NCBI RefSeq assembly: GCF_006345805.1
Contig: NC_042997.1
Span: forward strand, 57,040,001 to 57,104,000
DNA: 64,000 bases
Direction of reading: 5' to 3'
Origin: Octopus sinensis
Taxonomy: Eukaryota
The notes beneath the pieces are model-generated. The model was given only the letters and a program-made list of their open reading frames with translations, made no database searches and had not been told where the DNA came from. Each line of letters begins with the position of its first letter. Position 1 is the first letter of the stretch. Shown piece by piece: positions 1,337 to 45,827 of the stretch. A program made the position numbers and the translations under genes.

Positions 1337-1444
1337 TATGGAAAAACAGCCCTTATGAAAGCTATCATGGTTAAAGACTCGAATATTTTTCATATCATCT
1401 GGCAACATAGAAATGACAGCATAAGTTTACTTGAAACAGACCTT
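1337..1444 (+). CDS. exon, ankyrin repeat (YGKTALMKAIMVKDSNIFHIIWQHRNDSISLLETDL)
   Basis: cag| ... |gtgaga, phase 0/0, GxTAL ankyrin motif. Confidence 0.88.

Positions 1445-45827: not shown

Follow-up and report, generated by a model that had tools for sequence, protein, structure and literature searches.

What does a gene that recalls RNase L do in an octopus, and can its product still cut RNA? The question is raised by a stretch of 64,000 nucleotides of Octopus sinensis DNA (contig NC_042997.1, positions 57,040,001 to 57,104,000; hereafter the window), where an original prediction, made from the letters alone, saw ankyrin (ANK) repeats, a protein kinase fold and a KEN domain linked in one gene. 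The gene probably encodes a member of the animal ANK-protein-kinase-KEN family, within the RNase L/IRE1 superfamily, that would serve as a non-catalytic scaffold or regulator. Its product is one cytosolic protein of ~1500 residues. It is distinguished from IRE1 because it has no luminal part, and it is not callable as an RNase L orthologue. What sets it apart is a loss rather than a gain: the catalytic aspartates are absent, the core of the KEN domain is skipped, dead or gone, and the gene is nevertheless conserved.

The window is AT-rich animal DNA (~34% GC) with many transposon fragments, and it is colinear, at ~98.8% identity, with Octopus vulgaris chromosome OX597814.1 (GCA_951406725.2). 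The O. vulgaris locus used for comparison (L001, 97 kb) has its base 35868 at base 1 of the window. When a rough concatenation of the exons was used in a word-seeded protein search, the sole cephalopod protein returned was P0001, an annotated O. vulgaris protein of 1513 residues named 'Serine/threonine-protein kinase endoribonuclease IRE2'. Exon boundaries were obtained by tblastn of P0001 on the window, after which each junction was read. In this way, 13 exons were placed on the plus strand between 1828 and 48218, and they join into an open reading frame (ORF) of 1368 codons plus a stop:

1828-1926, plus strand: ankyrin-repeat exon, P0001 residues 146-178 (100% in tblastn, Ank family match, GT-AG)
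2813-2911, plus strand: ankyrin-repeat exon, P0001 residues 179-211 (100% in tblastn, GT-AG)
5930-6130, plus strand: post-ankyrin exon, SLLEKIRSPKEC...FINKCET, no Pfam family
12626-13588, plus strand: giant exon 1, 321 codons of low-complexity linker rich in K, S, T, N and D; open frame, matches P0001
16676-18576, plus strand: giant exon 2, 633 codons plus 2 nt, linker; open frame, matches P0001
20272-20422, plus strand: kinase N-lobe exon, GNHFVVVGLLSDGTELAVKLY..., with in-frame donors at 20386 (annotated; 20272-20386 in the model) and 20422 (distal)
21970-22158, plus strand: kinase exon ending in the catalytic loop, IVHGRLE for IVHRDLK (alignments to IRE1 and fish proteins)
25284-25377, plus strand: kinase exon, PKNILITVYGKLLLSNYGFHS..., NYG for DFG (alignments)
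31969-32048, plus strand: activation-segment exon, YSQKCWQPSEF...SDIQ (tblastn, alignments)
33490-33683, plus strand: kinase C-lobe exon, VAGMVAYFILSGGHHPFGK..., with a signature common to the fish ANK-kinase-KEN family
36006-36089, plus strand: first KEN exon, HPYFWSNQRKLQFLLTVGSDILNALML, ending in CA before the donor gtaagt, phase 2; top KEN-profile ORF
45689-45827, plus strand: last KEN exon, SQEVKDILGEPFNYFLKKFPKLFQVIFHVIGKSNHRRRNIYRIFY and stop, second-best KEN-profile ORF; the annotation exits at an internal donor after 45761 (45689-45761 in the model)
48204-48218, plus strand: alternative terminal exon of the annotated model, NGTV and stop, 4 codons (annotation)

Every junction of this model is GT-AG and the phases are compatible. 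Compared with residues 146-1513 of P0001, the rebuilt ORF shows 7 substitutions and 12 gap columns, all of them in the repeat-bearing giant exon. The window holds exons 4 to the end of the gene, whose start lies ~26 kb upstream of the window; residues 1-145 of P0001 are encoded by three exons located 0.9-26 kb upstream, so that the 5′ exons, whose recovery had been proposed, are now placed. The original prediction had also claimed one contiguous spliced frame from the ankyrin repeats to the kinase, and the uninterrupted plus-strand ORF bears this out. Its exon set was right as to the frame and missed the two giant exons (12626-13588 and 16676-18576) and the end exon 48204-48218. By contrast, the expectation that automated annotation would fragment the gene was mistaken, as a single model of 1513 residues exists. 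The O. vulgaris annotation draws on Iso-Seq and RNA-seq assemblies, protein alignments and ab initio predictions (PMC10700109), and the P0001 model may be transcript-based. At three sites the sequence appears to fit the homologues better than the annotation does, namely the donor at 20422, the read-through of 45689-45827 and an additional exon at 1337-1444.

A pipeline that mixes ab initio, protein and transcript evidence (PMC10700109) could have read two genes as one, that is, an ankyrin/low-complexity gene up to 18576 and a gene for the kinase and KEN remnants from 20272. This is highly improbable. The end of giant exon 2 encodes a conserved pre-kinase segment common to the fish relatives, and the exon ends in phase 2 (ag before gtaacc), its last codon taking its third base from the following exon. 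Moreover, a kinase-only gene would have neither a start codon context nor an N-terminus of its own, and the same domain order is found in fish, lungfish and cnidarians.

In the single protein, the order of the domains is 4-5 ankyrin repeats, a low-complexity linker of ~950 residues, a kinase fold and KEN remnants. The ankyrin families are matched at E values of 1e-14 to 1e-24 (Pfam-type domain matches). Three ankyrin exons lie in the window and two upstream, in frame with the kinase exons; the three include one that stands outside the annotated model:

1337-1444, plus strand: candidate extra ankyrin-repeat exon, YGKTALMKAIMVKDSNIFHIIWQHRNDSISLLETDL, in frame, phase 0/0

This candidate runs from TAT after the acceptor cag to CTT before the donor gtgaga, lies inside an Ank_2 match, aligns with the ankyrin repeats of RNase L and differs from O. 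vulgaris by 1 mismatch in 108 nt. The 145 residues encoded upstream consist of a basic stretch and two ankyrin repeats and matched only ankyrin families. The protein begins with MVRHKTLKRF..., and a stop lies one codon before the ATG in the first coding exon. No signal peptide, luminal domain or membrane segment was found in the protein, including the upstream 145 residues. Its best 19-residue hydropathy window is a Thr/Val/Pro/Asp repeat and no credible membrane helix, and the hydrophobic stretch ILLCLMATAQLV of exon 5930-6130 is too short and too weak for one. Thus, the predicted lack of an IRE1 luminal domain extends to the upstream exons, which encode no luminal or transmembrane region.

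The kinase fold is recognized without difficulty (Pfam Pkinase, 77.5 bits, E 1.5e-21), and its catalytic signatures are lost. The catalytic loop reads IVHGRLEPKN, compared with (I/L)(V/L)HRD(L/I)KP.N in IRE1 and the fish proteins, and HRD has therefore become HGR. In the magnesium-binding motif, (S/A)DFG of the same proteins is replaced by SNYG, with NYG for DFG. The glycine-rich loop (GxGxxG) is replaced by RGNHFVV, and the beta-3 lysine (AVK) is retained. Judged by its sequence, the octopus kinase domain is a pseudokinase, because both aspartates needed for phosphotransfer are lost. The C-lobe exon 33490-33683 is the best conserved of all exons against every homologue and matches IRE1 structures at E 1e-13. 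In the N-lobe, use of the distal donor 20422 adds VSLDSRFVVNYK, and the residue count from LDS to LCE is then equal, in a comparison by eye, to that of the fish homologue P0002.

The KEN domain is clearly present only as its first helix (36006-36089, HPYFWSNQRKLQFLLTVGSDI) and its C-terminal helices (45689-45827). When 4624 six-frame ORFs were ranked with a KEN profile (made of sequences of IRE1 and RNase L and of fish, lungfish, plant and cnidarian proteins), these two exons took ranks 1 and 2 (20.2 and 17.1 bits). The annotated model joins them directly and in frame. The joined domain covers profile positions 1 to ~20 and 81-123 of 127, and it scores 16.7-20.3 bits, below the PF06479 cut-off of 23.3. 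Read-through of the last exon to its own stop (45825-45827) adds VIFHVIGKSNHRRRNIYRIFY, which can be placed by eye without gaps on the C-terminal helix of the fish proteins. The central ~55 residues, which are the catalytic ones, were not found by tblastn with IRE1 and RNase L KEN sequences, by hidden Markov models (HMMs; fish and broad KEN) or by a position-specific scoring matrix (PSSM) on the six-frame ORFs. This missing middle is the site of the conserved Trp, the Tyr and the HEPN R-N-x3-H motif in active relatives (PMC3710099). Of the KEN domain that had been predicted, the first and C-terminal helices are there, whereas a catalytic core is not demonstrably encoded and the Pfam score is below the cut-off.

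Could the core be hidden in small exons? The 9.6-kb intron between the two KEN exons (36.1-45.7 kb) holds 328 candidate exons of compatible phase (2 to 2), and three of them, 60-69 nt long, resemble parts of the core:

36469-36528, plus strand: candidate micro-exon a, SSVYKWCSENLDEVISDMR, resembling the conserved-Trp segment, with the weak donor gtcaaa
38437-38505, plus strand: candidate micro-exon c, PIRNSVIELVIFLYNTCILYKQ, similar to the catalytic helix of KEN; its donor (gtaagt) is perfect and its acceptor poor
41115-41174, plus strand: candidate micro-exon b, EARLIQLSISFRNYGPHYL, the only candidate with RNxxxH

Candidate c is the best of the 328, its sequence is unique in the window, and it has SVIELV...N in common with the KEN helix of Actinia, SVIELVRLIRNTHAHI. 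It carries Tyr for the catalytic Arg and Leu for the catalytic His (YNxxxL). The Pfam KEN score is 20.3 bits without a core and rises to 27.5 with b, 28.8 with a and b, 29.5 with c, and 33.6 with a and c. Candidate a adds 4.1 bits alongside c, and 38 of 3761 null candidates score as high as a. As a pair, a and c come out on top of 51,526 ordered pairs from the intron, and 3-5 of 51,526 random pairs from unrelated parts of the window equal them. None of the three candidates beats the chance controls. Candidates a and c are possibly real or relic exons, although they are not significant against the null. On each of the favoured readings, that is, with the core skipped or with a core made of a and c, the RNase active site would be missing.

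Candidate b is the one on which a catalytic reading would depend. According to this alternative, a catalytic KEN domain is restored by micro-exons of the 36.1-45.7 kb intron that the annotation lacks, chiefly 41115-41174 with its FRNYGPHY, and the product is a working effector of the RNase L type, in which a ligand or partner bound to the ankyrin repeats dimerises the pseudokinase and triggers RNA cleavage. Exon b is flanked by cag and gtgctt in phases compatible with both neighbours, it shows the RNxxxH spacing of all active relatives, and it takes Pfam KEN above the cut-off; RNase L is itself a pseudokinase. The motif RN...H occurs in none of the 3761 null candidates. Nevertheless, chance alone should give about one single candidate with the HMM score of b among the 328 of the intron, and equally good chance matches exist elsewhere in the window. 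In the PSSM scan of six frames, b falls outside the top 15, and some chance matches score higher, for instance MIRNCLSHI on the minus strand. In addition, part of b falls within the left arm of an inverted repeat (41066-41160 / 41595-41694) whose other arm lacks the motif and reads Trp and stop at that place, and the 'exonic' part of the arms is more diverged than the flanking part. The position of the catalytic Tyr stays unfilled, the annotated model omits exon b, and the RNase L contacts for 2′,5′-oligoadenylate (2-5A) are not conserved. Candidate b is probably a chance match, and a working RNase is unlikely.

As a real exon, b was set aside on account of the inverted repeat, the single chance match expected and the low PSSM rank. 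The repeat itself delimits a segment of ~630 bp (41066-41694), bounded by inverted arms that are 76-89% complementary and separated by 434 nt. Its appearance is that of a small element of the foldback or miniature inverted-repeat transposable element (MITE) type, or of a local inverted duplication, and a second copy was not found in the 97-kb O. vulgaris locus.

A further reading combines both candidates for the catalytic helix. Mutually exclusive core micro-exons (41115-41174 with RNxxxH, 38437-38505 with YNxxxL), or skipping of the core, would make splicing the control of an RNase L-like effector, with an inducible cytosolic RNase and a dominant-negative partner, and perhaps a nucleotide second messenger sensed through the ankyrin repeats. 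There is a slim chance that this is the case.

If the gene has lost so much, is it still a gene? A gene decaying towards a pseudogene, in which the dead kinase and the broken KEN domain reflect erosion, would account for the loss of all catalytic signatures, for a KEN score below the family cut-off and for giant exon 2, whose substitution rate against O. vulgaris equals that of the introns. Yet there are no stops or frameshifts across 4.1 kb of coding sequence, and the exons are significantly more conserved than the introns. Between the window and O. vulgaris, the introns show 323 mismatches in 41376 aligned bases (0.78%), compared with 4 in 2400 (0.17%) for the coding exons without giant exon 2 (Fisher p = 1e-4) and 1 in 928 for the kinase-KEN exons (p = 0.012). 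A more distant comparison is offered by L002, a stretch of genomic DNA from another octopod (Logan contig 735728, run SRR11869385, match P0090), which aligns to window positions 16562-19234 with 87.5% identity over giant exon 2 and its intron flanks. Here a frame of 625 codons of giant exon 2 has been kept open at a synonymous divergence (dS) of 0.23 with a ratio of nonsynonymous to synonymous divergence (dN/dS) of 0.26. The last 60 residues of the exon, where the kinase region starts, are identical in L002 and the window. The gene is under purifying selection and is not a pseudogene; ongoing decay is very improbable. As a side observation, L002 also means that more distant orthologous sequence is present in public read archives.

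What remains most probable is the non-catalytic scaffold or regulator. Phosphotransfer would be impossible with the residues that have been lost, and RNA cleavage would be unlikely because the annotated transcript skips the KEN core and the best-fitting candidate has Tyr and Leu for the HEPN Arg and His. The ankyrin module would be kept for binding a partner or ligand, together with the pseudokinase and KEN dimerisation surfaces of active relatives, and the protein, rather than cleave RNA, would bring partners together or titrate them. Since both enzymatic activities would be lost, a scaffold or regulator is the most likely role. Several points weigh against it. The role is inferred from lost residues and was not observed, and conservation of the kinase and KEN exons shows importance, not function. 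An active site would become conceivable with candidate b, in which RNxxxH is correctly spaced. No spliced octopus fragment came out of word-seeded protein searches run with queries of several lengths. Finally, an AlphaFold2 prediction for the annotated C-terminal 330 residues, made with 15 fish homologues, was too poor to help (mean predicted local distance difference test (pLDDT) 47.9, predicted template modelling score (pTM) 0.40).

How close is the protein to RNase L? The two are alike in being cytosolic, with N-terminal ankyrin repeats, a kinase fold without kinase activity and a KEN-type C-terminus. Nevertheless, vertebrate RNase L (structures 4OAU/4OAV and 4O1O) has 9 ankyrin repeats in its human form, compared with 4-5 in the octopus, and it keeps HQD and DFD (checked in the 4OAU and 4O1O sequences), the motifs that read HGR and NYG in the octopus protein. 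RNase L carries RNLGEH in a core that is absent or reads YN...L in the octopus, and it lacks the ~950 residues of linker. The original prediction had suggested that 2-5A-binding residues be sought in the ankyrin repeats. In human RNase L, the residues contacting 2-5A are W60, K89, F126, E131 and R155. When the octopus ankyrin region is compared with human RNase L by BLASTP, the similarity is of the generic repeat kind only and comes in several registers; in the register over repeats 1-4 of RNase L, the contacts face gap/K, D/L, K and L, although the register between the two arrays is ambiguous. With that limit, W60, K89, F126 and E131 are unmatched, and no 2-5A site was recovered.

Closer relatives are found elsewhere. 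After P0001, the next-best matches are dozens of uncharacterised teleost proteins of ~920 residues with Ank, Pkinase and Ribonuc_2-5A domains and ~30% identity. A profile search of 1.84 billion representatives was crowded by giant ankyrin proteins and yielded lungfish and cnidarian relatives, the latter from the sea anemones Exaiptasia (XP_028518576) and Actinia (XP_031549468) and the soft coral Xenia. The lungfish and sea-anemone relatives combine ANK, Pkinase and Ribonuc_2-5A, while Xenia P0161 has two kinase-KEN units and no ankyrin repeats. All of the relatives keep HRD(L/I)KP.N, and all keep R-N-x3-H except Xenia P0166, which has QN. Two further oddities were seen in P0161 and P0166 (Xenia) and P0179 (ENA): some cnidarian relatives carry two kinase-KEN units per protein, and one metagenome-derived protein contains the catalytic-loop motif HRDIKPGN 15 times.

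The highest identity, ~30% over kinase and KEN, is to the teleost and lungfish ANK-kinase-KEN proteins (P0002 of Umbra, P0021 of Scleropages, P0112 of Protopterus), which have the same domain order. A pre-kinase segment (F.P..H..S.RW...L) and SDIQVAGM.AYFILSGGHHPFGK are common to the octopus protein and P0002, the signature of both being DIQVAGM..LSGGHHPFGK. The fish proteins keep HRD, DFG and RNLHEHY, whereas the octopus protein lacks the first two and the third is not demonstrable in it; they also have a structured middle region in place of the low-complexity linker, and their HEPN motif is followed by a shorter spacer. As in the octopus, where the KEN domain is partial, the cnidarian ANK-kinase-KEN proteins have ankyrin repeats, Pkinase and Ribonuc_2-5A in one chain. 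In contrast to the octopus protein, they have many more ankyrin repeats and intact HRD and RNxxxH, and they form clades of their own. The ANK-kinase-KEN architecture is thus already known in invertebrates, and the octopus gene is a divergent member of a recorded, uncharacterised family.

IRE1/ERN1 is the other known system to be compared. Among solved structures, IRE1 (4U6R, 3FBV and others) gives the best match to the octopus protein (E 6e-22), and RNase L barely registers. The kinase C-lobe, the HP(F/Y)FW start of the KEN domain and a long segment before the FP-L-F helix are shared by both. IRE1 has a signal peptide, a luminal domain, a transmembrane helix and an active kinase, whereas the octopus protein has ankyrin repeats instead, a dead kinase and a KEN core that cannot be demonstrated.

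Phylogeny was approached with a maximum likelihood tree of kinase plus KEN from 25 sequences (LG+C20+F+G4), for which RNase L and IRE1 were entered as rows copied out of PDB alignments. Human, yeast and plant IRE1 form a clade with support of 100/99, and all ankyrin-bearing proteins are on the other side. The octopus protein takes part in an unsettled three-way split with RNase L and the fish and lungfish proteins (84/83), and its branch is 3.06 substitutions per site long. In the approximately unbiased (AU) test, neither octopus with IRE1 (p 0.23) nor octopus with RNase L (p 0.41) is rejected. Accordingly, the kinase plus KEN phylogeny that had been called for puts the gene on the non-IRE1 side of the 100/99 branch, and it leaves orthology to RNase L unsupported, as the AU test rejects neither placement. 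The earlier view of the gene as an RNase L-like or independently assembled paralogue keeps its cytosolic architecture of ANK, (pseudo)kinase and KEN-like parts, and loses RNase L orthology.

These results also bear on a derived paralogue of IRE1 (an 'IRE2', as P0001 is named), in which the luminal and transmembrane part would have disappeared and ankyrin repeats would have been acquired separately from those of RNase L, the fish proteins and the cnidarian proteins. Such an origin would concern ancestry more than mechanism. It agrees with the best structure match, with the stretch from the HEPN histidine to the FP-L-F helix, which is long as in IRE1 and unlike the short fish one, and with the AU test, which does not reject octopus plus IRE1; independent ankyrin gains have been argued for (PMC10400998). 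On the other hand, the maximum likelihood tree has the 100/99 IRE1 clade without the octopus, which goes with RNase L and the fish and lungfish proteins. The top identity (30%) is to the fish ANK-kinase-KEN proteins and includes the pre-kinase segment and DIQVAGM...LSGGHHPFGK. An IRE1-derived origin is unlikely.

The RNase L lineage is restricted to jawed vertebrates and was lost in ray-finned fishes (Chu et al. 2023, PMC10400998), ankyrin repeats outside that lineage are likely independent gains, and functional coupling to OAS has been shown only for pairs from jawed vertebrates (PMC10400998). For Nematostella, the list of immune-gene homologues detected in the response to poly(I:C) includes one of 'RNase L' (Lewandowska et al. 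2021, PMC8476169), and a survey of Aplysia found no OAS-RNase L axis (PMC9334734). The present analysis gives no evidence for an OAS-RNase L pathway in molluscs. If the octopus protein is a non-catalytic scaffold or regulator, selection in octopuses would be maintaining a relative of RNase L and IRE1 that has lost its two enzymatic centres, a natural double pseudoenzyme. It could reveal non-catalytic roles of the ankyrin/pseudokinase/KEN scaffold, for instance in dimerisation, partner binding or the regulation of an active paralogue. With this gene, a mollusc joins the scattered animals that have ankyrin-kinase-KEN proteins (cnidarians, ray-finned fishes and lungfish). This is relevant to the question of a single or a repeated gain of ankyrin repeats in the superfamily, the gains being called 'likely independent' in PMC10400998.

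The linker of ~950 residues between the ankyrin and kinase parts is supplied by the two giant exons, which together contribute ~955 residues; it evolves fast and is partly tandem-repeated. Giant exon 1 matches no Pfam family and differs from O. vulgaris by 2 mismatches in 963 nt. In giant exon 2, positions 17216-17617 consist of in-frame tandem repeats, with a 33-nt unit present 4.6 times (TTLVDVTPVAI) and units of 18 and 54 nt (PD(V/L)D...). The window and O. vulgaris carry different numbers of copies, which gives the 12 codon gaps. The kinase region begins with the last ~60 codons of this exon.

As for non-coding RNA, neither a tRNA nor an Rfam family was detected in the window. The kinase introns contain transposon debris (23940-24716 on the minus strand and 25757-27180 on the plus strand), all of it broken by stops. 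This debris includes a remnant of a Tc1/mariner-type transposase, with matches to DDE_3 and HTH_Tnp_IS630 below threshold, and a reverse-transcriptase fragment whose RVT_1 match is likewise below threshold. A short interspersed repeat is present in many copies on both strands, for example at 6485-6673, 15673-15855, 34073-34375, 34432-34793, 43604-43876 and 57151-57372. Its translation reads ...GFFQF(P/L)S(T/I)KS.HKALV(S/G).RL..., it often adjoins (TG/CA)n tracts, and it is probably an octopus family of short interspersed nuclear elements (SINEs). A trinucleotide microsatellite of ~180-280 bp lies at 28804-29082 and gives homopolymer runs (N, T, L, I, S, V and Y) across the six frames.

In introns of the ANK-kinase-KEN gene, the window and the O. 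vulgaris locus differ by three indels of ~0.24, 0.68 and 1.96 kb. They lie at window positions 26696/26681, 28932/28911 and 35069-35071, opposite L001 positions 62630-62866, 65133-65813 and 71942-73902, and they are probably polymorphic transposon insertions. The largest (~1.96 kb) is directly upstream of the first KEN exon.

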